A stretch of 64,000 nucleotides of DNA from Calcarisporiella thermophila CBS 279.70 (GCF_041956535.1 NW_027192232.1:1-64000); one strand, 5' to 3'. Shown: positions 33,118-51,540, numbered from the stretch's first letter. Notes: generated by a model not told the origin, from the letters alone. Made by a program: numbers and translations.

Positions 33118-36100
33118 TTATGAGGGCGGAGTATTCAACACATCCACATATCGTGATCTTGCCGGTCGACGGTGTCCCGCTGCCGAAGAGCTTCGGATTC
33201 CACCCGGTGGTGCTAAATGGCCAGATCCGCTTGGGCTCAGAGTGCCGCTTGAACGCCTCGTATCGCTTGGCATAGCTCTCTGACCCGGCGTCGACATCGG
33301 CCTGGGAGGTGCGCCTAATCCACCAGAAGCCGCATTCTCTTTGGACGCGTGGTCCAGCATCGAGGGGGTTGCAGATCGAGATTTGGGTGGGGGAGGAGGG
33401 GGGGCGGGTGCCTCTGAGGTGGCGCCGGCCTTCTTGTTAATCCACCGCTTCTGTGCTTCGTCGTAGTAGAACTGGTTTTCTTCGCCAAGGTTGGCGACAG
33501 GTGGGCCGGTGCGTCGACTAAAGAAACTGAACACGCTCCATCCTAGCGTAGTTAAGAAGAAAAAAATACATCAATGAAAGATGTTAGCCGGGGGAAGTCC
33601 AACGACTGAGCACTTATATATCCATTACCTTTTGACTCCTCCTTCCCCTCGGCTGCCTTGGTCTTCTTTTCTCCCTCTTCTTTCTTCTTCCTCTCTTCCT
33701 CTCCCTGTTGCTGTTCCTTCTTCCGTTGATTTGCGTTATTTCCAAGCCCTAGATCGTCGTCCAGTGGTGGATTTTCGGCTTGCTGCTGCTGCTGCTGCTG
33801 TTGCTGATTTTGATTGGAGGGCGTCGAGGGAACAGCAAATGGCATGGGCGATGGCACATAGCCCATGGGGGATATAAACCCGCTGGTGTCAAAATTGTCT
33901 TCAGCAGGCTGCTCGGCTGCATTCTCTGTTGTCTTTGCCCCGTGTTCATAGTGGGCCTCATCCTGTTGCGGCTGATACTGGCTATAGTCGGTATAGCCTG
34001 TGTAGTTGTCGGCAGAATACGGTGCTTGCTCATCTTGTTCTGTAGCCCCGTACGGTTGGTAGTATCCATAGTTGTTCTGTTGCTGTCCCTCCTGTTGATA
34101 CTGTTCTTGATACGACTGTGACTGATATTGGGAGTGCTCCTGCTGCTCCTGCTGTTGCTGTGTGTCGTTATTGTATTGAGACTCATAATAACCTCCATAA
34201 CCCGCATAGTCACCGGACTGGTTTGACCATTCGTTATAGGTGTATTGGCCAGGTTGCTGCTGCGGTTGCTGCTGATCTAGAGTCATCTGCCCATAAAACG
34301 CGTCATATTGAGCGGCAGCCTCACCCCCTGCTTGCCCACCATACTCTCCATAGCCGTTATATGCAGCGTAGCCGTACTGGTCGTTCTGCTCTCCGTCCGT
34401 TTCCGCAATTGGCGACATGATCGTTTGCCCTCCTGACATCAAGGATGCCCTCTTGTTCGCATTGTTCAGCTGATTTTCTTGAGCTCCAGGTACCTCTTCT
34501 GCCGGCTGCTCCTGTTTACTTGGTGTGAATGCCCGCAAGAAAGGAGATACCACTGAATTGGATAGCATGATGTTTGGAGTTTTGGCACGGCGAGCTGGCT
34601 CTACCTTCATGCCTGGAGTCGCCCGACCTGTCCTCATCTCGGCGGCGGAGGCGCTACGTGCCGGCACGTCGGTTGGAATTTGTGGCTGAAGCGGTGATTC
34701 CTGAACTACACCGGGGACCGCCGCATTCTCTTTAGCAGCTTTATCCTCTCCCACCTCATCGCCCGCAACAAACTTGTTAAGCTGCCCCTCGATGGAGCCC
34801 CAGATCGAATCGAGTGACGGTTTAGTCAGCATACTGCCAAGCCACGAACTCACCCCCTCATGCTCCACACTTCCAGAGCTATTCTGCTCTATTAATTCGC
34901 TCAGCTCTCGTAGCTTTTCCAAGAAACACTTGTGGAAGTATGGAGAGCCCTTCGTGTACACTTTCAGGAAATTGGCAATCGATTCACAATAGCGTCGAGC
35001 TTCGGTCAAATATCCTGAATCAGCAAGTCGCCAGGCATATATTAACTTGTAGGCGGATAAAAATGGTAGCGCGCCCGCGCAGCTACTCCCGCTCTTGAGG
35101 CAGAGCCCGAATTCATAGAGTTCTGTAAGGCGCAGGGCGTTCTCGTCCATAAACATTGACCAGCGTTTTGGATCGGCGCCGAGCAGAACAAGGCGCATAC
35201 GGGGGGTGTCAATCCCTGAATGGATGGACGATTGGGGAGAAAGTAAATAACATATATGAGCAGCCCCTATCCACCCGTGTGAGGCAAGCAAGTCCCCAAG
35301 TGCGGTCATGGCTGCTGTATCGCCGGTGGTGCGATTGGCCAGCACGAGTGTAAGGATCTCTCGCCATTTTGCCAACTTATCCTTGATAGAGCGGGAATTG
35401 TTACGATCGCCAGGAGTAAATGGAGACGAGACCATGCCCTCTTGCCCTGGGGTCGACTGCAGAATAGCTTGGGGATGCGCAAAAAGTTCCTGGATCGCTT
35501 GTTGGCCTCTCCCTGCAAATAGTGAATATAATACACGTAAACCCTCGCGATCACTAGATGAAATTACGGCGGATCGGGGCATTGGAGTTTCGCATAGTTC
35601 GCGGCGTGCAAATTCGCAGACAACTTCCTTCCACAAATCCCGGTTTACACAGCTACTGATAATCAGAGCATGGGGCCACATGTCTTCTTGTATAGCGTAT
35701 TTTACAGCCTCTGTGCGATCTCCCCGCAATAGCATTTCCTCAAGTGTATCAAGGCCGGTGTTTAGTGCTTTATTATCACGGAGCTGTTCTGTGTTTGGGA
35801 TGGAATCTGCAGGGACTGTGAAATTCTCTGGAGCAGCCGCTTTGGGAGGTGGCGCCAAATGTTTTCGCACAGCTTCCTCAGCCTTAAGACTATTGTAAAA
35901 TAGGCCAAGGTCAAAACTATCATTAATTTTGAAAAGGGAAAAAACGTTGTTTTACCATCCGGCTAAACCTTCATTTTCCAAGGTAATTTTAACTGCTTGC
36001 CACAATAAAATTGTGTCTTCGAGCTGTCTTCGATTCTCCCCTGATAATGTTTCAGTTTGGGCCATAAATTCGCTTATCTGCTGCTCCATGTATTTTATGG

Positions 36101-39100
36101 CATCTTTCCGCTTTGCTTTTACACCGCCTTTGTTGTTGTCTAGAAGAAGTGGACCGGGAAAAGCATCGAATCGCGATGGCTCCAATTCTTGGATAAGGTC
36201 TTTGATGCTGCGGATAAGGAGGTCACTTGGTACGACTTTATCGACAGGGCCGTTGGAAGTGGAAGTAAAGCGCTGTACTTTATGAGGGAACATCAAGATG
36301 GCCTTGCCTATCATGAATATGGTATAATGAGTATTATATCCCGATTCAATTTTAACGAAATTTACCTCCAAATCCAAACGTGATCAATGGGCACCCTCTA
36401 GATCTCCCAAGTGGGTCAGTATCAGCAATTGAGGCATGCATGTACTGCGACTGATTTTGTTCCGCGCCAGCATAGCCTGTATAGTCATACGGTTGGTCCT
36501 GCTGATAATAGGCCGAGTCACCATATTGCTGTGTATCATACTCTCCGTAAGTACCATATTGTCCCTCATGCTGCTGGTAGTATCCAGCACCAGTTTGTTG
36601 GTCGTAGTTTTGATTATAATAATCATAATTTTGATTATAGTAATCTTCGTATTGCTGCTGCTGCTGTTGCTCATACCCGCCCACTTGATCTTGGCCAAAC
36701 CACTCAATATTTTGTTGGTTATTTTCCATGTTATCTTGATAGGCCGGCTCAGTTGCTAAGGCGGGCGTCTCAGTTGATTCAGTAGAAGTTACAGCTGGCT
36801 GTTGGTACTCATATGCTCCATAGCTCATATAATCATACCCACTTTGGCTTGCATGAATTCCAGTATCCGCGAGTGCTGTGTTTGCGTGCTCGCCACTCAT
36901 CTGTGAAACTGCGTGCTCCTGCGTTCTTTGAGATATATCCTTCAGTTGTTGTTGCGGAGGTGATTGATGCTGTGACACAGGGGGGGCTTGATTATATGAG
37001 CCATGCATGTTATAATCAGTGCTATTACGGTTTGACGGCGGTTGGTGAACAGGTGCTTGAACAGGCGCTTGAACAGGGTATGGGCCGTATTTCTCATGTG
37101 TAAAGTCCTTGCTCGATCGAGTAGATGCCTCCTTTGGCGAATTAACTGACGGTATCTGAAGAGGCATTGGAGGCCCTTGATCAAAGGCATTATGATCAAC
37201 ACTGTTTCTAGCTGAAGGAATGCGTTCGGAGGATACAGATTGTGCTGATAGTGAGCCACGCTTATTTTTTGCAAGCTCGACGCTTAATCTCTTGGCAGGA
37301 AGTTCCTGCAATATCGGAGGGGAAGTTTGGTACTGTTGTTGTGGGGGTGGAGGTTGGTACATGCTGTAATCGGTGCTGCTTCGAGTTGAGAGAGGATACT
37401 TAGAAGAAGGCGGCTGAACTGAAAACGGACTTGGTATACTCTGGGTTGATTCACGGCTTGCTCTCCTAATTTCCTGTTGCATGGAGGGCTGATGGGAAAT
37501 TTGATTTTGATGTGGAGCTGGTTGTTCAAATAATTGGGCAGGGGGCTTTGCTAGCTCATTCTTCCCTTCAGGCTGTGACGATTTCTTAACGCTGTGCACA
37601 TCTCCTAAGTTCTGCGCTTCTTGTTCACGGGGATATATTTGATTGTCATAAATAGTATCGGTAGCCTCGATTCCAGAGTATGTCTCGTGATCAGCGGGAG
37701 TAGCATCAGGATTTAACATAGACTGATCAGAGTAATACTGCTGTCCATACGCATCATATCCATAATTATACCATCCATTGTCTCCGCCAGCAGCCACTTG
37801 GCTCTGATCCTGGATGGGAGGAGAAGCTACGGTTGCAATATTTTGTATGTCAGAGTGTTTTTCATTCTCGTCTCCAAGTACAACTTCATTAACAGGTTGA
37901 CGAGGGGGGCCATCGAGAGAATCATCAATATCTGCATCAGTTCTCTCGCCGATAACCGAATCTCCAGCGGGCACTTGATGATCATTCCCAGGGATAGAAG
38001 AGTTTTGGTCTTCTGTTGCCGATAAAAGCATCGTCTCCTGATTCTCAGTTATTACCATTCCTACACCATCACCAGACACTTCGTCAGAAGTTGAATGATG
38101 TTCAAAAAGCACTTGCTCATTCATCATTTCGGGTACATCAGCAGTAATAGTGGGTTCGGGGGTTTTCTCCTCTATGGCAGCAGTGATAATAGGGACAGCA
38201 GATGTGGTGGTGGAAGCTTGATTTTGTAGTTCAGGAAAAGGAGAATCTTGGATATCAGGGACATTATCGGACATTGGTTCTTAGAGAAAAATACACAGCG
38301 GTAAATTCGACGATGTCATAATAAATAAAGCAAAAGATGAAGGCAAGAAACTTACCAAATGTCTCGAGTCTCGAATCTGTCTGTGTGTCGGCCCAAGAAT
38401 GCACTTCCTTTGTTTCTTCCATAGTATTCTCTTGATCTACAGTTGATTTATTTGGGTCAGCCTTTAAGAGATCCATATCACCTCCTGCTGTTAAAAACTC
38501 TGGATATGCACCGTAGTCATAAGATTGGTGTTGTTGTTGCTGCTGCTGCTGTTGCTGCTGCTGTTGTTGTATTTGCGGTGGCTGTACTTGATTCTTTGCA
38601 GACTCCTGAGCGAAGGGGCTATCTTTTGACAGTTGAGATTTTGAGTCGTGCATGGTTTCCCACTGTTGCTGCGGTTGCGATAACTGCTGCTGTTGCTCAA
38701 CTCCATACATATTTTCATTTATACCCCATTGTTGCTGAGATTGCCCTTCGGTGGCATAATGTCCATAATACTCCATTCCTTGTTCCGAGTGCATTTGATT
38801 ATCAGTGTAATGGTAATTATGCCAATCACCCTCAGGTGTATTAGCGTAGTAATCGGCACCCTGTGCATAGTAATTCTGGTGATCTTGAGTTTCCCCCGTA
38901 GCCACGGGGTGCTGTGCGTAATATCCCTGGAAATATGATTGATTGACATCTTGCCCTTGCTGAGGCTGCTCGTAATAAGATTGTTGCATATATCCGCTTG
39001 CATTATAATCGTAATTATACCAATTGCCTTCATCCTGGTGCGTTTGTTGCTGTTGCGTTTGCGGTTGAAATTGGCCTGAGATTGAGGATGGTTCAGGGGT

Positions 39101-39553
39101 TGGTGTGGAAATTTGTGCATTCGCAGGCGAAAAGGTAATCGGTTGTGCGGATGGGGATGTTACAGCGACGTTGGGAGTAGGTTGGGAATACAAACTCTGT
39201 GATGAATTGTACGTATTTCCAACGATCTGTGGACCGGCAGCTATCGGATTCTCAGTAGGAACCAGAGATGCCGGTTGTGAAGTGCTTTTTAACTGACTAA
39301 AGAAATCATCATTTGCTGGCACTTCTCCAAATAAAGATGACGAAGGTTCATATGCTATTTCGTTGGTTGGCGCTGCAACTGGTACTGAAGGAAGCTCTGA
39401 TTGCTTCGTGTGTGGTGTTGCAGTCTTAGGGGTCGATTTGATGTTAGAGGTGGTAAGGGAAATGGATGAGAAAGGATCGTCGGATGTTCCCTCGCTAAAA
39501 AATGGGATTGGCTCGTCTTCGGCCACGGACTTATCTTCCTTTGTAGTTGACAT
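33118..39553 (-). CDS. SEC16: COPII coat assembly protein Sec16
   Basis: Long Q/Y-rich disordered N-terminus; CPLITFGFGGK, FPGPL, EAVKYAIQEDMWPHALIISS, WREILTLVLANRT, AAHICYLLS; C-terminal ANLGEENQFYYDEAQKRWINK and RSRYVDVL. Confidence 0.93.
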
Positions 39554-40585
39554 TAGAAAGGAGAGATCGTCGTGGAAAACAAGCAATTACAAGCGGGATG
39601 GTGAAGTAGTTATCGATTATGCTCTTCTCTCAAAATCAAGTGATATAAGAGAGCACTCCGCGATTTTTTATCGTCAACCGGGTTCATTCAGAAGACACCA
39701 CGTCATAAGAGCCCTTATGTAAACCGGGTCTGAAACTCTTCTGATCCTTTGGAATAATCAAATAAATTCAACCAAGAATTCAAGAAACTCCAGGTTTTGA
39801 ATTTTAATTGCCAAGGAAAGCTTTTCATCAAGAGGTTAAACGGATCTATGATACTTCAAATATACCGAGAAATGATGCCTTTTGTCCCTACTATTACCAA
39901 TTCACTTTCTGGAGTATGGTCCCCTATAATTTAATTTGATATGATGCTTTTAGGAATTAGAAGCAAAAAAATCCCATACCCTTACAGAGCATTAATACCG
40001 TTTTAGAAAGAATATTTAAATTGGCATACCAGGCGTTGATTTGTAAATGCGATGGCCTCAAAACATTTTTTTACTAATATCAACGTGTACTTTTACTTAA
40101 AATTATTACCCCTTTAGATGCTTTGTGCAATTACGACACATACAGAATAGCTTAATAAATGGTCTAATTGTTTAGGTATTGTATAAAAACGCCTATGAAG
40201 TTGCTCAATGGAAAACTTGCCGTTATTGGTGGCTGAGGACATATTAGACAATGATAACCATAGCTTATCTGGCATGATAATTACACTAGGGTCCTTAGTA
40301 TTAGCTTGACACGGTTGAAGAGGTGATATTTAAAATATAGGAAGGATGCAAAAATTGGCATCAATATTTGATTTTTTTTATAATCATTTCAATAGATGCT
40401 TGGTATACTAATTTCTTGTTTTCTCATTCCTTACAAAAAATTGAAGCAATTTAAGAAAGGTACATCTCCAAAATAACACGATTTGAGAAAAGTATAAATT
40501 ATGATTAAATAATGGGAGATTTGGGATTTACATATACATTAATGAGTGAGATAGAGCAAAACGAATTGAGATTTTTTTGCCATGT

Positions 40586-42529
40586 TCACCACCCATAGTT
40601 AGCTATAATGGATTTAAGTTGTTCCAACGAAATGTGTACCTTCTCTGTCAACTCGCGAGTATGCTGCTCAATACCTAGCGTGTTTACGCAAGGTAGTATT
40701 CGCAATATCCAGAGAAGATGCCATAAGGCTTCGGGTATTCGCTCATGCGGGAACGATGGGTCCTGAATCAACCATATCAGTGCATCATATGCAACACTAA
40801 GCACACCAATAAGATCCCACACAAGACATTGTGCATCCAATTCGATCACTTTCGATACAAGTTCCACAATACGACAGGCGCCTTTCATGCACAACTCGCG
40901 TCGCTCATTGTCTCCAGGTTTTTCCTCTTCACAACCCTCCGAAACTGGTAGACCTATCCGGATCAAGAGTGAGAGATAGATGGTCTCATAGCTGGATCGG
41001 AGGGCAAAACATTGGGGATCGTTTCCACTTTCTCGCAGCTCGGAAGGGCGGTGTTCATGTAAGCGGGAAAGAAGCCTCCATGCTTCACGTGCGAACCCCT
41101 CCTCCTCACGCTCTCGCCTTCCACCAAGAAGAAGAAGCTGTCGAATCATCTTAACTAGCTGGGTTATCACTGAACCATGTACCGCCACCACCGGATTTTC
41201 ATGCGGTAGCCGAGAAATTTGTCCCGGCTCCCAGTTTGAAGGGAGCCACCAGTTCGCAAAATTCCCAAATATAATGTTACAACCTTCGAGAAACATAACA
41301 CCGTGAGACGCACGCCGGTATACCTCGTCAACATAGGGTAGATTGTTATCGTACAATGCGGTATTGATAGGTTGTTCGAGGTGTTGCCTTGCTAGGTAGA
41401 GATAGTTACTCTTTTCACCTTCGTATAGAGAACAAATGTGCATGGCCATAAATGATATGACAACTGAGAGCGTTGCATTGTCGAAGTGTTCGCTCTATAG
41501 AAACATAAATCATCAACCAAGAATCAAGAGATACGCGAAAGATTCCGCTTTTTTCTAGAGATATTAGAGTAAATTAGCGAAAGGATATTTACTGCCAAGT
41601 GTTTTGCATGTCTAAAAGCATATTCAGAAATAACTTTAAGCCGCGCATCCTTCACTCCGCGTCGTAGTTCGTGCCTCGCCGACCATGCCATCGATGAATA
41701 GCGCAAGAGTTGATCAAGCGTCGCATTTTGAAACTCCCAAAGAAATCTCTGACGATTTAGGATACGGTATGGGAAGAAACAGTCGCAAAATGACACGGCC
41801 AAGTGAAGTAACAAAGTTTTAGGGAATTGTTTTTCGAATTCCAGCGGGTAGGCCAGGTCATTGGTAAGTTGTGGAGAAGAGCAGCGTTGCTTGCGCAGGG
41901 AATTATCAGAAATGAGCCCGTATCTCCATATAAGCCGTGTCTTAAATGCCCGAAATGCATCATCTTTAAACAAATAAACATCTCGAATAACAGGCTCTCC
42001 CCCCCATTTACTACCACTTTCACCTAACTTTTTGACAGCCCGCAGCAGATCTGAAATACTTGAGACCCCAGTGTCGATTCGTAGGATGTTTTTATGAGTG
42101 TTCGCGACGCTCCAGCCTTGCGGTAGCCCTTCAAGCTTTAGCTGCGTCGAAGGCAGAATTCCGCTTACTAGAAGGTGACCTACACTATCTTTTAATTTAT
42201 CTTCTAGTTCACGAACTCGTCGTGTAAACTGTCCAAGTCGTTGTGAGAACACTTGCACGAAATTTATTTGATTAGTTGTGCTGGGTGGATAATAACATTC
42301 GACACCAGTCGATAGACAACGTGAACAAGCAGCTATTTCCATGGTACATCGTGCCTAAGCGAAATGATAATGAAGAAGCTTTGAAACTAAAATAACTCCA
42401 ATGTATCTTTTTCAGCATCGGGCATCATCTCACCTTACGTCGCCGACATTCTAGACATGCATTTATCGAGCGGGTCGCATTCTCAGTCTCATCAAAATAA
42501 TCCGCAGTGTCCTCCAACTCATTCGACAT
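40586..42529 (-). CDS. Divergent Zn2Cys6 transcription factor (TF4, paralogue of TF2)
   Basis: ACLECRRRK|ARCTMEIAACSRCLSTGVECY; LPQGWSVANTHKNILRIDTGV; KHLA|SEHFDNATLSVV intron at the same position as in TF2. Confidence 0.83.
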
Positions 42530-44130
42530 GTTTTCCTTTGAAATGAATGATGAATTCTTGGAGCCTTTCTTATAAGGCCTGTTAGGCACGGTTGGAATGC
42601 CAATAACCGGTGTGTAGCTTATTCTTTATTTTCACCGGTATGAGAAAATTATCGTGCCCTAATCTCATTCACCATTTAAAGCAATAAACTAATTTTATTT
42701 TAAGCCCCGTTTGGCCATAGACGGGCTGATTTTGGATTAACAAACTCGCCGATTCATTAAGCCACTAAAATCATTAAGCTTGTCAAAAATAATTAATAAA
42801 ACAAACCCGCTCATATTATACAGTTTTCGCACGACGTTCAACGTTCTATTCAATGCATGTATACTTTCACTGTAGGTTTGGGTGCATTCTGCCTAATTCC
42901 TACTCAATATTGCGACCCACAACCGGTGAATGATGGGAATGGAATATGGGGTTAGTTTAACTTCTGATCTTGATGGATTTCCATCACACAATCAGGTATC
43001 ACATGAACATTTCTAGATGTTTAGCTCAGATGCACTCTATTCATTATTGACAAATTTACTGATTGTCCAATCTTCGCTTGTAATTTAACTTATGTTGGCG
43101 GATGAATTTGTGCATTTGGTTTAAAATGCTGGCTATAAGCTTTGCATTCATCTAGCACGTATTGCTCCTATTCATAACCTCACTGGTTATGCTGCCACTT
43201 TGATGACTCAATCACTATGCAATCAATTCTCCAAAAAAGTGATATTCTAAGATGTTTTCGGTCAGTGACTACTTTCTCCGAGCTATGAACTCTAATGAAC
43301 ATATCACTAAAAGCGAGATAAGCCTCAGGTGGAAATACATTGCTATCTTGGCGATGGTTAACCGATTGCGACAAGGAAAAGTAATCGAAAGCGATCGCAA
43401 ACATGCGTAGCATCAATTGTAATATGAACCTATCATAAATTACTCGTGAGAAAGGTTTTTCATATATTAAAAATATTATTATATTAAAAAACAAATGATG
43501 CAATTTGAGCTAATGTTTTGAGGCACTGGGAATGAATATAGTCTATAAATTTCGCTAATATTTTTACTACTTTTTTTTTCCTTACTTTTAACATACCTGA
43601 AAATTCGGTTTTCAAATTGGGAGCTAAACGTAAATTTACCTAAAATAACGCATATACAACATTAGTGTAAACCTCTCCGTTTCACGGCCAATTACACTTT
43701 TTAAAGTCTATACTTATTCGAGAGGATAAAGTGAATACCGGACTTATATGTGCAATGATTTATAAGCTGTATGTACTTTATCAATTAATGGTAGTAGGGA
43801 CATCTTAGTGCATTATATTTAAGAAAAAAAATTGGTTCGTAAACCGATGGTGAGTTAACTGCCGAGAAGGGTGGTTCATTATTCCTTTAGCTAGCTTATG
43901 AACCTTCCTATTGTGTGAGTATTAGAAAATATAATTTTCAAACCTATCAAAATTGTTAGTCTTTTTATTAATATTAAATAGATACTGGATATTTTAAACA
44001 GCGGTGAAGGTGGATTAAAACATTATAATATGCCTTTATTAGTGATGTAAGGTTGTAAAAAATGGAATTATATGTAATTAGCTCTACAATATAATAGTTC
44101 GATTTTTGGTCAATTAGAGGGATACTCTTC

Positions 44131-44487
44131 TCAACGAGGCACTAAGCATTCACCGCCCAAATATTCGCCACTCAGCTCGAACGTAAACTCTCCATCTCGA
44201 GTCACGACGGGGAACTCGTTGAGACAAAGAGGGATCTTACGCTTCTTGAACGACCCTTTACCTCGCTTTTCTAACGGCGTATGACTGAAAGTCAGTCCGT
44301 TAACGCTGACGCATGAATCACCAAAGGACGCCGCCCCCTTTACATGATAGGTGCCATGTCCCGATACTGGGACTAAGATCGGCTTACATAGGGACGCCGT
44401 TGAGCTTATTACGTCTGGAGAATCCCGCTTTTCCAGGGGGAAAGCGAAGGTGAGGCCAGCGAAAAGAGAGAAAATGGCCAGACGCAT
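44131..44487 (-). CDS. Small secreted pro-protein SSP1 of a two-repeat Cys family (118 aa)
   Basis: Signal peptide; PLEKR occurs twice plus KKR; repeats C-x24-C and C-x25-C; TATAAAA at 44571-44577; homologous to SSP2 and SSP3. Confidence 0.85.
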   Translation of the reverse strand: MRLAIFSLFAGLTFAFPLEKRDSPDVISSTASLCKPILVPVSGHGTYHVKGAASFGDSCVSVNGLTFSHTPLEKRGKGSFKKRKIPLCLNEFPVVTRDGEFTFELSGEYLGGECLVPR

Positions 44488-45384
44488 GCTGTCGTATACT
44501 AATGGAATTATAGGTTTGGACTATGGGAGTATATTCGGTGAAGTAACGATCGAGTTTCAATTGTTTTTCTTTTTATACTCGCCTTATAGTTGGACTATCG
44601 CTTCGGACTAGGGCATCTAGCAAAATGTGCCATGGCTGGCAAATACCTTCAGAGGGGTAATTTTACAAACAACATGGTAGCAAATTTGATGGGATAATTT
44701 CAGATCTTACCCTTGAATGCAGCGATCAGCGCTAGATTATCCGAAACTTATTTTGGAACCGAGAGTAATTCACCCTGGAATATGCGCATATGGACGCCTG
44801 CAAATTATTTTAGCTCCATCTACTATTTTCAACGGTTCATCTCATCGAGATTCAACTCTAAGCTCATTTCTCGTCGCAATTTGTTTGCTATTAGCCCATG
44901 GGTTGAATTATCAATTTTTGCTTAGCCTGCAATCACTGGTACCGATCCAGGTTGCACGGATCAGTGAATTTCCTATGTCAGAAGGAAAACTTGCAATCTT
45001 GAAAGTACTAGACCATATCAGTAGGATGAGAGAAAAGGCCGCACTCATCTAGTATCACTAGCCACTACTTAAGCACGCACAAACGTGTAATTCAACCTTA
45101 GACTATATTGTTTTTTTAACCCGAAAATAAGGTAATCAGCAATAAGATTATCGAAAGTTTTGGATTTAGTTAGAGTCAAAGAGGGGAAGTGGGATAAATA
45201 AAAATGTGGCACCAATAAACTAACAAAATTTAGCAAACTAAATTGTCAAAACAGACAATTTGAGAAGAATACATAGGCTCTTTATTTAATGAGCGATTGT
45301 AACCAAATATATCGTAAAATACTTATCGATTCTTATTTCATTGTCAAATGATCACATTAAAATGATAATATGATCAGTTGGAAC

Positions 45385-46002
45385 TTATCGAACATGCGTT
45401 AACTTAGAACGGAGTGGACGCAGGCAATCCTCATTCCGATACTTGGCTAGGATTGAAAAGTCATACGTGCCAACTTTATCCATTGCAGGGAAGCTATCGG
45501 CACAAAGCGAGATTTCGGATTTCGAATTTTTATCGGCTCGTATAGGCATGGGAGGGGGAGGGACAGCGATAGTTTCGTAAACTATTTCTTCAACATAGGG
45601 AGTGGAAGTAGTACATCTACCGGTGGTGTCGGGATATATGGTTATAGGGCGAGGCGTAATGGGCGATATCGTAGGGGTCAAGATAGGAGGAGGAATAGGA
45701 GGAGGAGGGGGGCCCCATTGATACCAAGTTGTGGTGGTCACCGAAGTCCTTGCGGGAGACATAACAATAAAGTAGTTTTGCACGGACACACAATTCCCGT
45801 CATAATACGCTGTACCGCGGATTTTAAACTGCCCATTTTTCGGGACGCTTAAACGAACTGGTGAACACAAATGAACCCTACGGGAATCTCCAGTAGTCAG
45901 AAATCCGACTCTGGGATCGTTACTAGTGTCTACCGCAGGGCGAGGTAAATAGAAAGCAAGAGTAAAATGTAAAAAGGCCAAAAGACAGAAGGTGCGATAC
46001 AT
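45385..46002 (-). CDS. Secreted protein SSP2 of the same family, with Pro/Thr-rich linker (205 aa)
   Basis: Signal peptide; LCSPVRLSVPKNGQFKIRGTAYYDGNCVSV and LCADSFPAMDKVGTYDFSILAKYRNEDCL repeats; TATATAA at 46072-46078. Confidence 0.85.
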   Translation of the reverse strand: MYRTFCLLAFLHFTLAFYLPRPAVDTSNDPRVGFLTTGDSRRVHLCSPVRLSVPKNGQFKIRGTAYYDGNCVSVQNYFIVMSPARTSVTTTTWYQWGPPPPPIPPPILTPTISPITPRPITIYPDTTGRCTTSTPYVEEIVYETIAVPPPPMPIRADKNSKSEISLCADSFPAMDKVGTYDFSILAKYRNEDCLRPLRSKLTHVR

Positions 46003-46203
46003 GATTCCAAATAACCAATGGCACTAGAGAAAAAAAATGCCTCAAAGACTCGGTCCAGATTCCGCGCATCCTTATATACTAGAGCACACCTTAAGTTAAC
46101 TGGGGTTCAATAGGGCGCTGAAATGGCTAACACTGCTCTTCACACATAAATAAGCCTTCTTTGATTAAGATTCGATTTGAACCTCGAACAATTTCGATGT
46201 TCA

Positions 46204-46210
46204 TGAAACA
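46204..46210 (+). promoter_or_regulatory. Possible pheromone response element (TGAAACA, preceded by A) upstream of SSP2
   Basis: Exact match to the yeast Ste12 PRE consensus ~200 bp upstream of the SSP2 ATG; short motif, could be chance. Confidence 0.25.
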
Positions 46211-46432
46211 TACTACTTGACAATAAGAACAGTCTTGGAAACATGAATTAGACCCTGTTTATATCAAAAACTCCTCATTCTCATAGCAAAGCTGCTAAAG
46301 TTATGAGCTTTAAGTTGATGTGCTCTTGAGAATGTTAGATTAAGCCCATTTATTAGTCATTGAAAAGGGTATTAAATACTATATATTCAATCCAATTAGT
46401 AATTAATCAAGTGAGAGAATTTAAAAAATAAA

Positions 46433-47590
46433 CTAGCATTTATCGCTAACTTCAAGCACAATTTGTATCTCTTCGCCCTCTTCATTTCGCATTCTTTTTA
46501 GGTGATCTGATTGGCTCTGCTCGCAATTCGAACAATAGTTCAATGCATTTCCACCTGTCACTGGCGAAGCTTTCACATGGCTCTCGATCCAAACGATCCG
46601 GATGGGAAAGCGCTGAGCAGTTTGTTTACATTTTAAATATAGCGACTCCCCCAAGCGATTGTATAAGCGGAGCGCTTCATGTGAAAGGCCAAAGAAAATA
46701 AACCAACATAATGACACAAGTGCATGCCAGTTAAACAGTGCAGCGGGCGCGTCGTTTATTACGATGGGAGTCCAGAAATTTTTAACGCCTCCACTCGCTG
46801 GAGCCGTGTCTATGAATTGGAGATCACGTACAAGTTCGATTGTATTTGTAGGAATGGCGATAAGAAGATACACAAGACAATATAGAGCTATGCGATAAAG
46901 GTGATCCTTTTTAATATTAAGCTGTGTACGTTCGAGGATAGCGTCGATTTCATTTTTTCGTTGAAATATGGAAGCCAAAATTTTCCCTACATAAGTCAGA
47001 TGGTTGTTTTTTTAATATTTACTGCTATAAATATTCATTCTGAGTGAAATTATAATACCGCAATCATAGACACCTTGGGCCGCAAAAATGGTGGGCCAAA
47101 TCGAGAGAAGGAGTAGAGCTCGCCAGCCCTCCAACTCCAAACTTGCAAAGCATCCTCGTACAGGCGCAATATCATAAATCCTCTTTGCGGTAGCATACCG
47201 TAAACCAGAATAGAGAAAAGGAAATACTCCCGCTATCAAAATATCCATTCCAAATATATATCTCTTCGTTCTGTTTGTTATCGCATCTGGGGATGAGAGA
47301 AACATATGCATAGTCGAGAGTGCCCTGTTACAAGATAATAGTAACCCGACGGGAATGGCGGACTGAAGGCTTGTGGAGACAAGACAATATGCCCTCGCAA
47401 TATCACCTGTTTCCTCTTTGAAAATCAAAGCATTCACGAAGGTAATTAGATTGGATGCAAGGGCCCAGACAGCCAAAAGGCAAATGGCAGGAGAACTTCG
47501 TAACGTGCGTACATAGAGCACCGGGGTACAGCACAGGATCCCAATAAAAGAGGTACACAGTACTAAAGAAGCGGGTAATGGACTCCCCAT
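46433..47590 (-). CDS. STE3: STE3-family (a-factor-type) pheromone receptor GPCR, ~361 aa
   Basis: Exons 47590-47059 and 46986-46433 (GT-AG); hydrophobic TM segments with STE3 hallmarks CLLAVWALASNLITFVNAL, AYCLVS, KR...DILIAGVFP, YDIAPVRGC, IWP, FIFFGLSHEA. Confidence 0.88.
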
Positions 47591-48049
47591 TTATATTAGG
47601 CGGCCTTAAAATTTACACTCATCAAAAGTAGTATGCGGGAAATGATTTTTTATATAATCTTTATATTCTTTCCGAGCTTTTTTTTAATCTTTTAATGTCC
47701 AAATATGTTAACTAAACGTTCTAAGACTCGGTACACATTTAAAGCAAAATTATTGGGGCACTTGCCGTTTTACAAAGCTTATAATTTAGAATTCCGATGC
47801 TTGGAAAAGATGCAAGTCTGATATAACTTAGCTGATTAGATGATTCCAGCAGTCTATCCTATGGAATGAGAAATAAAAGCAATTATAGAAGTTATTTTTG
47901 TTATTCAAAGATATGCACATCTATTGCCATCCGTTGCCATCCGTTAAATTATTATCTCTATGATTTAAGATCAAATCCTAAACCTTCTATTTTGAAGTAT
48001 ATACAACTCTAAAAAATCTTTGTGCTTATTTAGGGTTATTTCTCCTTAT

Positions 48050-48057
48050 TGTTTCAT
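48050..48057 (-). promoter_or_regulatory. Possible PRE (ATGAAACA) in the STE3/SSP3 divergent promoter
   Basis: tgtttcat on the + strand, roughly midway between the divergent ATGs of STE3 and SSP3. Confidence 0.25.
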
Positions 48058-48453
48058 GCCCTCTAAAGAAGGGGTGGTATCCTTTTTCTCTTAAATCAAC
48101 AGGAGTCAACAGTGATAAACCCATCTATACAGGGCGTGGGCCTAGTGATATATTTGATTCTCTAGGGATCATGAGGGGAAAATGAGACATGGGTCAAGCA
48201 TCCTACGTAAAATTAAAGAAATGTAAAATCTTCATACCATGGAAAAACGGGTGGATATCTATTCAGAGTTAAATAACGATCTTCCTTTCTACATACTAAT
48301 TACAGCCAATAAAGTCACATTGCAATCGCGGATATTTTTTTTTCATAAATTGAGCCTCTATATATTAGAGAAGAATTCTTTTTTCTGTATAAATATACAG
48401 CATATATATTCATCAATAAACTCTTGCGGTTTAAGCCAAGGTGCTTGAAAAAT

Positions 48454-48837
48454 ATGTTTGCTAAACTCCTACTTCTTGCTCTCGCACTCAATACTATCGC
48501 AGAGCCTATAGCCAACAGTCATAAACTGGTGCCTTATTGCTATACTCCACATATTCCTGCGTATCATGAGGGGATATATCGTATCGAAGGGAGCGCTAAA
48601 TATTCCGGTGGTTGCGTTGAAGTTGCACGATTAGGTGTTTCGCCCCCCGATTATGATCAGGGAACACCCGAGGAACTTATCGAAAATATGAAGCGAAGTG
48701 AAGGTATACCACTCTGCAAAAACACGATGCCGGTAGAGAATCATGGAACATACAGCTTTGAAGTGGGGGCCGTGTACAACTTTGGCGATAGCTGCTTGGG
48801 TGTAAAAGAGGTGAAAGCAGAGCGTATTGGAGCATAG
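48454..48837 (+). CDS. Small secreted pro-protein SSP3 of the same family (127 aa)
   Basis: Signal peptide MFAKLLLLALALNTIA; YCYTPHIPAYHEGIYRIEGSAKYSGGCVEV, KR, IPLCKNTMPVENHGTYSFEVGAVYNFGDSCL; TATAAAT at ~48388. Confidence 0.85.
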   Translation: MFAKLLLLALALNTIAEPIANSHKLVPYCYTPHIPAYHEGIYRIEGSAKYSGGCVEVARLGVSPPDYDQGTPEELIENMKRSEGIPLCKNTMPVENHGTYSFEVGAVYNFGDSCLGVKEVKAERIGA

Positions 48838-50346: not shown

Positions 50347-51540
50347 ATGAACCCCATTGACGCCGTGGTCCAGCTTCCACTTGAAGAGCGTTCCCAATAC
50401 ACCGCTGCCCTTCGCTACTTCCTCTCCACAGCCCCGGGCGCTTGCTCCGCCACGGCGCCCTATCAAACCTTCAAACTCCCCACGGGGGACAAGATCACTT
50501 GCGTTTTCCACAACGATATACCTTTTGTTTCGGCGCCCGACATCTTGCGTATACTGTACTGTCGCTTTGCGCTTCTGGGACGGCAAGTGATAGACCTGCG
50601 GAAATTCGAGGAGGGCATCCAAAGCGATCTGCGCCACCTTCAGGTGGGTCTGTCCGCGACTCTCGAGGAAACAAGGTCGCCGCTCCTCCAACTTCTGCAC
50701 TGCAAGGGGAGTATAAAAACGCTCAAGAGGCAGAAGGTCTATTTCTGGTTCGCAGTGCCGTATGACAGGCTGTTCCTGGACGCGCTGGAGAGGGATATCC
50801 GGCGAGAGAGGAGAGGGATGGCCACAACCAGCATTGCCTTGGCTGAGCCCGCAACCCGCGTGAGCATGGACCGAACCGACGCCCGATTTTTCGAGCTGAG
50901 AAAGGAGCTGCTGGGCGACGAGGGCGCCTCCCATTTAGCCGGCGTGGCGGAGGGGGAGTCGTTTTTGGAGCAGCTAGAGGAGGCGAAATCGGCCACCGCG
51001 TTTTCCCTTTCGCCGACCTCGACCGTTACCCACGAGGACGAGAGGGAGAATCCCGCCCTCTCGTTCAAAGATACTCTCCCGGACCTCTCTCCCACCACCT
51101 CGGACTATAACCCGGCCGTTTGCTCGTTTGACAAGCGGGCCTCATCCCTTATGTTTTCCCCCATGGATTATTTTTCGCCCCTAATACCCTCGCTGCCCAT
51201 CCTCCAACCCGAATCCCCCGAAAAACTCTCCGAGCCGCCGCTACCAACCCACGACCGCCCGCACGTCTGCCCCCACGAGGGATGCAGAAAGGCCTTCAAG
51301 CGGCTGCAGCACTACAAGCGCCACCAGCGCACCCACACCAACCTCCGCCCATTCGTGTGCGAGACATGCGGGAGAGCGTTCGCCCGCTCCGACAGCCTAA
51401 CCGTCCACCAGCGGACGCATCAACGCAATAGCCTTCAGCCGAAGCAGGGCCATTTGGTGAATGCGCATGGTAACAAGCAGCCGATGGCGGGGGCCACGGA
51501 GCAGGAGTCCTTTGGAAATGTACAACTAATAAATTATTAA
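50347..51540 (+). CDS. STE12: STE12/SteA-type transcription factor (STE domain + two C2H2 fingers), divergent, intronless
   Basis: LRYFLSTAP, KFEEGIQSDLRHL, KTLKRQKVYFWFAVPYDRLFLDALERD; CPHEGCRKAFKRLQHYKRHQRTH and CETCGRAFARSDSLTVHQRTH. Confidence 0.92.
   Translation: MNPIDAVVQLPLEERSQYTAALRYFLSTAPGACSATAPYQTFKLPTGDKITCVFHNDIPFVSAPDILRILYCRFALLGRQVIDLRKFEEGIQSDLRHLQVGLSATLEETRSPLLQLLHCKGSIKTLKRQKVYFWFAVPYDRLFLDALERDIRRERRGMATTSIALAEPATRVSMDRTDARFFELRKELLGDEGASHLAGVAEGESFLEQLEEAKSATAFSLSPTSTVTHEDERENPALSFKDTLPDLSPTTSDYNPAVCSFDKRASSLMFSPMDYFSPLIPSLPILQPESPEKLSEPPLPTHDRPHVCPHEGCRKAFKRLQHYKRHQRTHTNLRPFVCETCGRAFARSDSLTVHQRTHQRNSLQPKQGHLVNAHGNKQPMAGATEQESFGNVQLINY

Follow-up and report, generated by a model that had tools for sequence, protein, structure and literature searches.

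Putative secreted proteins with paired cysteine-bracketed beta units are encoded on both sides of the single STE3-type receptor gene of Calcarisporiella thermophila

The window analysed here, a 64,000-nucleotide stretch of the genome of Calcarisporiella thermophila CBS 279.70 (GCF_041956535.1 NW_027192232.1:1-64000), carries what appear to be three real, paralogous and intronless genes, SSP1 (118 aa; 44131..44487, minus strand), SSP2 (205 aa; 45385..46002, minus strand) and SSP3 (127 aa; 48454..48837, plus strand), and their products seem to constitute a lineage-restricted, orphan family of small secreted proteins. In each of them a cleavable signal peptide would precede two homologous units, about 35-45 residues in size, which probably arose by internal duplication. 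The whole family brackets an STE3-type pheromone receptor gene within 4.7 kb. We are quite confident of this molecular description. A functional link of the SSPs to STE3 signalling, which we draw from gene position alone, is a tentative proposal that we lean somewhat against, and the complete explanation, secreted two-unit beta proteins with an STE3-linked role, seems to us evenly poised between right and wrong.

The evidence that the three open reading frames are genes comes from several directions. A profile of the family finds the three loci in the whole genome with E values of 1e-38 to 1e-51 (SSP1 4e-38, SSP2 2e-51, SSP3 2e-46), and a six-frame search of the complete genome links the paralogues too (SSP1 versus SSP3, E 1.8e-4). 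Together these two types of search of the 28-Mb genome yield three loci with six units and nothing more. The GC content of the three frames is 0.46-0.52 (0.52 in SSP1), whereas that of the surrounding intergenic DNA is 0.30-0.37. Each gene has one sense-strand match to the TATA consensus TATAWAWR, for which the background is 0.18 sites per 200 nt: TATAAAAA lies 90 nt upstream of the SSP1 ATG (44570..44577, minus strand), TATATAAG 76 nt upstream of the SSP2 ATG (46071..46078, minus strand) and TATAAATA 66 nt upstream of the SSP3 ATG (48388..48395, plus strand); STE3 likewise has one. For SSP3 the ATG at 48454 is preferred over the TTG at 48424, and for SSP2 a 125-aa version that begins at an internal Met is also in the database (P0003). 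The paralogues are only about 50% identical in DNA, their likeness being kept at the protein level, where they are 29-35% identical to each other. That they should be chance ORFs or decaying pseudogenes is accordingly a most improbable reading: no homologues vouch for them, but the same Cys spacing, cleavage motif and hydrophobic pattern persist despite the DNA divergence and the saturated synonymous sites, and the coding-type GC and the TATA box 66-90 nt upstream of each ORF speak against it as well. The synonymous differences (pS 0.75-0.83) leave the dN/dS correction undefined, and the low identity, which the initial annotation had ascribed to diversifying selection, is explained equally well by the age of the family and the small size of the protein.

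The cysteines of the precursors lie at residues 34, 59, 88 and 114 in SSP1, at 46, 71, 167 and 193 in SSP2 (with two more, one in the signal peptide, C6, and one in the linker, C130) and at 29, 54, 88 and 114 in SSP3. Exactly 24 residues fall inside bracket A and 25 inside bracket B in all three proteins, and the A and B repeat motifs that the initial annotation had proposed, C-x24-C and C-x25-C, hold in the alignments throughout. By Cys spacing and unit alignment, unit A extends from Cys34 to Cys59 in SSP1 (44311..44388, minus strand), from Cys46 to Cys71 in SSP2 (45790..45867, minus strand) and from Cys29 to Cys54 in SSP3 (48538..48615, plus strand); unit B extends from Cys88 to Cys114 in SSP1 (44146..44226, minus strand), from Cys167 to Cys193 in SSP2 (45424..45504, minus strand) and from Cys88 to Cys114 in SSP3 (48715..48795, plus strand). 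The gaps between the second and third of these cysteines measure 28, 95 and 33 residues in SSP1, SSP2 and SSP3, in agreement with the linker lengths first given (28, about 95 and 33 aa). An alignment of all six units has C, G and C as invariant positions; the units span 26-27 residues from Cys to Cys, flanking strands not counted, and their identity to SSP1 unit A is 21-48%.

The resemblance of A to B, from which an internal duplication had been surmised, rises above chance. Unit A of SSP1 and unit B of SSP3 give a Smith-Waterman score of 68 (z 10.8), a value reached by none of 500 shuffles, while the pairs SSP3-A/SSP3-B and SSP1-B/SSP3-A score 37-38 (z 4-5), and the unit alignment agrees; inside SSP1 and inside SSP2, the A versus B score alone is not significant against shuffles (z about 1.1). 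Since the units are related, as the SSP1-A versus SSP3-B comparison indicates, derivation of the two repeats from an internal duplication is supported by their sequences. Recent gene conversion between SSP1-A and SSP3-B was considered and ruled out, the DNA of the two being only about 50% identical.

Structure prediction gave a consistent picture of SSP3 and SSP1. The models were built from the three sequences only, and nine of ten have a mean pLDDT of at least 77; the AlphaFold values are pLDDT 81.3 and pTM 0.67 for SSP3, and pLDDT 81.4 and pTM 0.63 for SSP1. Both of these models have two four-stranded beta units in the same strand order with an exposed linker between them, the linker being of low confidence (block means of 64 in SSP3 and 61 in SSP1). 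The predicted unit is made up of a short strand, a Cys, another short strand and a long hairpin with the second Cys in its turn. Each four-stranded element reaches past its Cys bracket, and in both models unit A continues after its second Cys as a strand that leads up to the linker; hence the bracket would not itself be the structural unit. In the simplest reading each Cys pair would staple its own unit, and the two units would be joined by a linker at the surface whose length is free to vary (28 to 95 residues). The two models had no fold match in the PDB (best Foldseek E values 0.11 and 0.22), their best Z in a VIA-align comparison with 48,161 chains was only 4.5 and 3.1, and structure comparison with the Atlas stayed below a TM of 0.5. 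The result is thus a predicted two-unit beta architecture without a solved match, which, the queries being models from three sequences, is not proof of a new fold; it does make the proteins a cheap target for structure determination.

Secretion, as claimed in the initial annotation, is what our heuristic predicts for all three proteins, each of which has a hydrophobic N-terminus and a T-[FLI]-A cleavage-type site. For SSP1 hydrophobicity and the -3/-1 rule place the signal peptide at residues 1-16 (44440..44487, minus strand), with predicted cleavage between TFA and F and a mean KD of 2.39 in the best 10-residue hydrophobic window. What happens to the proteins after this step is less uniform. 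As had been noted, SSP1 has PLEKR in front of both repeats: the first, a Kex2-type site, occupies residues 17-21 (44425..44439, minus strand), and the second (residues 71-75) lies with KKRK (residues 81-84) in a linker segment (44236..44277, minus strand) that the model shows as an exposed loop of low confidence. The two PLEKR copies use different codons. The linker of SSP3 does contain the reported KR, a single one at residues 80-81 (48691..48696, plus strand), where a short predicted helix ends. The 95-residue linker of SSP2 (45505..45789, minus strand) is Pro/Thr-rich, with the unpaired Cys130 and no dibasic site, and in this protein an RR sits four residues before unit A. The SSP3 precursor has no dibasic site before its unit A.

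The SSPs could be precursors that Kex2 cuts into two disulfide-looped peptides (35-45 aa) or into an insulin-like molecule of two chains, but we hold this to be unlikely. They do share a signal peptide (heuristically predicted) and internal repeats with Kex2-processed repeat proteins (KEPs) and alpha-factor-type precursors (PMC6339444, PMC7329392), and SSP1, but only SSP1, also has LEKR-type dibasic sites before each repeat. KR, RR or KK between the repeats occurs in SSP1 (LEKR, KKRK) and SSP3 (KR) and not in SSP2. KEPs with long peptides have, moreover, been reported in Mucoromycota (PMC6339444). However, KEPs are defined by at least three repeated peptides, the number that the published pipeline needs (PMC6339444), and the SSPs have two; KEP repeats are short and linear, whereas those of the SSPs are Cys-bracketed beta units of about 35-45 residues that are predicted to fold. 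Similarly, alpha-factor-type precursors carry tandem, identical or near-identical peptides of 9-24 aa after KR and STE13 dipeptides; the SSP units are longer and far from identical, and no STE13-type XA/XP spacer follows KR in them. We estimate that chance alone would supply a dibasic pair roughly every 100-200 residues. Because the dibasic sites are not conserved in position across the three proteins, and the SSP2 linker has none, the peptide-precursor reading is limited to SSP1: cleavage into peptides or two chains, as first suggested, fits that protein and finds no support as a family-wide trait. It also sits uneasily with predicted units that extend beyond their brackets and with a strand that continues to the linker. 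For residues 22-75 of SSP1 paired with residues 76-118, complex prediction run without controls gave a score of 0.02, which speaks neither for nor against this reading. We would rather have the SSPs leave the cell whole, as disulfide-stabilised all-beta proteins. In SSP1 a Kex2-type protease would probably trim the chain behind the first LEKR and may also nick the linker; release of free peptides would not be the common mode of action of the family.

The description of the family as unrecognised has stood up to all of our searches. The SSPs match no Pfam-A or NCBIfam family at E values up to 1; nothing credible was found in PDB sequences, by word search, in the ESM Atlas or in metagenome contigs, and among 1.84 billion representative proteins a profile search picked out no credible relative. 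We discarded the profile matches P0004-P0010, long bacterial proteins with near-identical tandem beta repeats: the matched units have no Cys bracket, and the scores of these proteins add up many weak strands of the G-x-[FY]-x-I-x-G-T-A type, the Pfam rows being equally low-complexity. One of them, the bacterial dockerin protein P0008, has a locally similar stretch (I-x-I-C-N-N-M-A-P ... G-G-T-Y-D-I-V), but with an hhalign probability of only 45% it is a weak lead and no more. Calcarisporiella is, to our knowledge, the sole sequenced member of a deep and poorly sampled lineage, and this can alone explain the missing relatives.

Together with the predicted architecture, it is the location of these genes, the feature of most interest, that lifts the family above the routine. 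Fungi have orphan families of small secreted disulfide proteins in large numbers, and taken alone the SSPs would be one more of them. The gene that they surround (46433..47590, minus strand; two exons; Pfam PF02076, E 2e-22 and 4e-8) is the only STE3-type receptor gene in the genome, and the next gene is a STE12-type transcription factor (50347..51540, plus strand; Pfam PF02200, E 4e-35), one of at least eight paralogues. The order is SSP1-SSP2-STE3-SSP3-STE12, with SSP3 and STE3 divergently transcribed and the SSP genes 400-900 bp from the receptor. GC3 is 0.40-0.42 in SSP2, SSP3, STE3 and their neighbours (36 to 49 kb) and 0.51-0.72 outside; SSP1, unlike the rest of this block, has a GC3 of 0.54. 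In our preferred explanation, local duplication would have placed the SSP genes on both sides of STE3, in this low-GC3, AT-rich block near a STE12 paralogue, and the proteins may have an extracellular role tied to a pheromone-response or cell-recognition programme, as secreted factors co-regulated with it and not necessarily as ligands of STE3.

A bolder view would make the SSPs ligands or secreted modulators of the adjacent receptor, at a non-Dikarya pheromone/receptor locus that uses proteins instead of farnesylated CaaX peptides; we find this quite improbable. The gene order, the single-copy receptor and a low GC3 of the kind that goes with rare recombination would all suit it, as would the scan for CaaX ORFs between 39 and 53.5 kb, which gave only one marginal 21-aa ORF, ending in CLVY (40346-40411). 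Nevertheless, a CaaX pheromone gene could sit elsewhere in the genome, beyond the interval scanned, and a mutual identity of 29-35% is hard to square with a single receptor. STE3-type receptors are known to bind prenylated CaaX peptides, all of the ligands known to us as characterised being farnesylated and exported without a signal peptide; the SSPs carry predicted signal peptides and lack CaaX, and a link to pheromone signalling is drawn from position only. The comparison with the basidiomycete P/R locus (PMC6730849, PMC4915694) is similarly two-sided. There, too, several small paralogous genes lie on both sides of an STE3-type receptor, but they encode pheromone precursors of 35-70 aa with no signal peptide and a CaaX end for farnesylation, whereas the SSPs come with signal peptides, carry four or five Cys when mature, end in ...CLVPR, ...THVR and ...ERIGA and not in CaaX, and have no sequence likeness to them. 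Trisporoids are the known pheromones of zygomycetes (cited in PMC7490403). Were the SSPs indeed ligands or modulators of STE3, they would represent a new class of fungal protein pheromone and offer a view of P/R-locus architecture outside the Basidiomycota. We know of no characterised ligands or roles for STE3-type receptors outside the Dikarya; an STE3 with three candidate secreted partners would be a direct entry point, even though a protein ligand has a low prior probability.

The more mundane possibility, to which we give serious though not leading weight, is that the SSPs are generic lineage-specific secreted proteins, serving for example to associate with the wall, coat the surface, antagonise competitors or bind nutrients, and that they came to surround STE3 by accident, as orphan genes born and tandemly duplicated in a stretch that is AT-rich and poor in genes. 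Orphan secreted-protein genes commonly gather in such DNA, and the STE3 neighbourhood may therefore be coincidence. The lack of relatives in the databases searched, the AT-rich intergenic DNA of the island and the Pro/Thr-rich linker of SSP2, which resembles wall or O-glycosylated proteins, would all fit. So would the promoters: the window shows no enrichment of the Ste12-type PRE motif TGAAACA (12 copies against 11.0 expected), the two copies in the island (46204 and 48050) being compatible with chance, and a 20-nt word shared at 85% identity upstream of SSP2 (46042-46061) and STE3 (47720-47739) is also at chance level, as we estimate that about two such pairs are expected in 11 kb. Two STE12 homologue loci, in Umbelopsis and Mucor, have neither an adjoining STE3 nor similar small secreted genes, although these are perhaps not the orthologous paralogue. 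On the other hand, all members of the family, and only they, flank the single STE3 from both sides, and a STE12 paralogue comes next. Within this reading, a classical antimicrobial peptide is disfavoured by a net charge that is not consistently cationic (K+R versus D+E: SSP1 12/10, SSP2 21/15, SSP3 10/14).

Among fungal lineage-specific, effector-like families of small secreted Cys-stabilised proteins there are beta-sandwich effectors held by one disulfide. The SSPs resemble such families in being small, secreted and, as predicted, all-beta and disulfide-stabilised, with conserved Cys at low identity, and in occurring as tandem paralogues in AT-rich DNA with no Pfam match; they differ in their saprotrophic, thermophilic producer and in a two-unit pseudo-repeat with a free-length linker that matched no solved structure. 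As to receptors, a search for one of the STE2 type detected none, but its control also came up empty, and the STE3 intron (46987-47022), as read from the sequence, is a 36-nt, in-frame segment that contains a TAA. Finally, in the STE3-centred signalling gene cluster of Pneumocystis, where we know of no secreted two-repeat proteins described, STE3 adjoins STE12, as it does in Calcarisporiella thermophila.

The stretch from 44131 to 48837 carries three intronless ORFs that flank a STE3-type receptor gene on both sides and encode small secreted-type paralogues: SSP1 (44131-44487, minus strand, 118 aa), SSP2 (45385-46002, minus strand, 205 aa) and SSP3 (48454-48837, plus strand, 127 aa, with the ATG at 48454 as its best start). 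Their GC content is 0.46-0.52, as against 0.30-0.37 in the neighbouring intergenic DNA, and at the N-terminus all three proteins combine a hydrophobic core with a T-[FLI]-A cleavage-type site that is conserved among them. One sense-strand TATAWAWR lies 64-90 nt 5' of the ATG in each of the SSP genes and also in STE3; in the intergenic DNA of this island around STE3 the motif has only 8 matches in 8.6 kb of strand length, five of the eight being those four sites. Genome-wide profile searches (28.2 Mb, 116 contigs) found exactly three SSP loci, with six units. Judged from their sequences, we consider the SSPs a real and unrecognised family of internally duplicated proteins that are predicted to be secreted. 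One member, SSP2, is represented in a public protein collection (as P0003) by a 125-aa model that begins at an internal Met (45385-45762) and lacks both the signal peptide and the first unit; this is probably a truncated gene call.

The two Cys-bracketed units that the initial annotation had described do have a fixed spacing, exactly C-x24-C in unit A and C-x25-C in unit B of all three proteins, and the linkers between them are as variable as claimed, with gaps between the second and third Cys of 28, 95 and 33 residues in SSP1, SSP2 and SSP3. The six units can be aligned over 36 columns, with C, G and C invariant and a pattern of hydrophobic/aromatic positions in common. Between orthologous units the alignment scores are 49-66, where shuffling gives means of 17-20 (z 7-12). 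Comparing A with B units gave 68 (z 10.8) for SSP1-A and SSP3-B, and 37-38 (z 4-5) for both SSP3-A/SSP3-B and SSP1-B/SSP3-A. Such values support well the internal duplication previously proposed from the likeness of A and B, SSP3-B being the intermediate that connects the two types. Recent gene conversion might also have made SSP1-A and SSP3-B alike; at the DNA level these two units are only ~50% identical, which excludes it and therefore argues that their likeness has been kept at the protein level. Between the paralogues, synonymous differences are saturated (pS 0.75-0.83, pN ~0.50), and dN/dS, which would bear on the diversifying selection suggested earlier, is not computable.

The dibasic sites are distributed unevenly. 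PLEKR does occur twice in SSP1, as had been reported, and linker KR sites are indeed present in SSP1 and SSP3 and absent from SSP2. The SSP1 sites comprise a textbook Kex2 site, LEKR, which directly follows the signal peptide and recurs, in different codons, in the linker. In SSP2 there is an RR four residues ahead of unit A, followed later by a 95-residue Pro/Thr-rich linker that has one unpaired Cys and no dibasic site. SSP3 has no dibasic site ahead of unit A and a single KR in the linker. By published definition, Kex2-processed repeat proteins (KEPs) carry a signal peptide and three or more repeats separated by dibasic sites (PMC6339444). Unlike these, the SSPs have two repeats only and their dibasic sites are not conserved; we conclude that the family as such does not work by a peptide-precursor mechanism. 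The earlier proposal of Kex2 processing into peptides thus survives in part: only SSP1 fits it, and trimming of an SSP1 propeptide, perhaps with nicking of the linker, is plausible, but the proposal does not extend to the whole family, the SSP2 linker having no dibasic site.

That the family is unrecognised was borne out by searches of family, protein, Atlas, PDB and metagenome collections. Pfam and NCBIfam gave no SSP match, and a word-indexed protein search returned only the query itself. When a profile of the three mature SSPs was searched against 1.84 billion representative proteins, it returned the SSPs themselves, no relative and seven long bacterial tandem-repeat proteins; the latter repeat a generic beta-strand motif without the Cys brackets and were rejected as relatives. 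A bacterial dockerin protein of 360 aa (P0008) has a profile E-value of 3.5e-4 but an hhalign probability of only 45%, and is no more than a weak lead. P0008 has two internal repeats, each ending in I-x-I-C-N-N-M-A-P ... G-G-T-Y-D-I-V, locally like the start of unit B. No relative was found by feature searches of the ESM Atlas (top values 0.77 and 0.75), among PDB sequences (best E 0.41) or in metagenome contigs. We know of no closely related sequenced genome for Calcarisporiella, and so orphan status is to be expected for a fast-evolving small protein and is not remarkable by itself.

AlphaFold2 models, built on an alignment of the three sequences only, gave a pLDDT of 81.4 and a pTM of 0.63 for mature SSP1 (all five models having a mean pLDDT of at least 79), and 81.3 and 0.67 for mature SSP3. 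The order of elements is identical in the two: each unit is predicted to consist of a short strand, the first Cys, another short strand and a long hairpin with the second Cys in its turn. With this order, the Cys bracket would be shorter than the structural unit. The linker is modelled in SSP1 as a low-confidence loop carrying LEKR and KKRK, and in SSP3 as a loop and short helix ending in KR. Foldseek found no match for either model among solved structures (E at least 0.11), Atlas structures gave TM below 0.5, and VIA-align against 48,161 chains reached best Z values of 4.5 and 3.1, both below the usual background of that method (Z of 7-8). A new fold is accordingly a lead and not a proof, as the models rest on three sequences.

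All members of the family bracket the only STE3 locus in the whole genome. This gene (46433-47590, minus strand) lies between SSP2 and SSP3; SSP2 and then SSP1 follow downstream, also on the minus strand, and SSP3 is transcribed divergently, with 863 bp between it and STE3. Its two exons, searched separately, both match PF02076 (E 2e-22 and 4e-8) and are in one frame, split by a 36-nt intron (46987-47022) with GTAAAT at its start, TAG at its end, CTGAC as branch point and a TAA in frame. The intron length being a multiple of three, the unspliced gene would resemble a pseudogene with a premature stop. The genome search gave no Pfam match for STE2; its controls were empty, which makes this a weak absence. 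Genes of the block 36352-48837 have a low GC3 (third-position GC) of 0.37-0.45, compared with 0.51-0.72 outside it. The block takes in the N-terminal part of a SEC16-like gene, a transcription-factor-like gene, the SSPs (SSP1, at 0.54, being the exception) and STE3, and leaves out the adjacent STE12 paralogue (0.72); low recombination across this block is one interpretation of the pattern.

Could the SSPs be ligands of the receptor they surround? The known STE3 ligands are farnesylated peptides that are exported without a signal peptide, whereas the SSPs have a predicted signal peptide and no CaaX box. We regard a direct ligand role as improbable, and a broader functional link with signalling in pheromone response or cell recognition as less likely than not, if considerably less remote. 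The odds of a direct link are lowered because the Ste12-type motif TGAAACA shows no enrichment, the promoters share words no more often than chance predicts, the SSPs lack a CaaX box, a scan of the island (39-53.5 kb) gave no convincing CaaX ORF, and STE3-like receptors are reportedly conserved broadly among fungi (bioRxiv 10.1101/546531), so that the presence of STE3 here is not anomalous in itself. The sole CaaX-like small ORF of the island, 21 aa ending in C-L-V-Y (40346-40411, plus strand), is too short and isolated to be called a pheromone precursor. As a kind, the SSPs are an ordinary lineage-specific family of small secreted disulfide proteins. What goes beyond the ordinary is the unmatched predicted architecture together with the close bracketing of the only STE3 gene, a combination that is moderately interesting and readily testable.

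The SSP/STE3 group is itself flanked by two regulatory-type genes. On one side, two adjacent minus-strand ORFs of 272 and 287 aa (40586-42342) have no Pfam match, but the N-terminal Cys arrangement recalls that of a Zn2Cys6 cluster; the two are probably parts of a single, intron-containing gene of the fungal transcription-factor-like kind. On the other, the next gene downstream (50347-51540, plus strand, intronless) encodes a short STE12-type factor of 397 aa (PF02200, E 4e-35), whose best named relatives are three Calcarisporiella thermophila proteins. The STE12 factor is single-copy in most Dikarya, and its expansion in C. thermophila, a thermophilic early-diverging fungus of the Mucoromycota grade, is unusual: STE12-like loci, which combine an STE domain with C2H2 fingers, number at least eight or nine in the genome and lie on contigs C35, C32, C5, C13, C31, C18, C28 and C17 in addition to 50347-51540. 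The product of the C35 locus (34864-36657) is 100% identical, over all 598 residues, to the public C. thermophila protein VTP21DRAFT_7970 (P0012), one of those three relatives.
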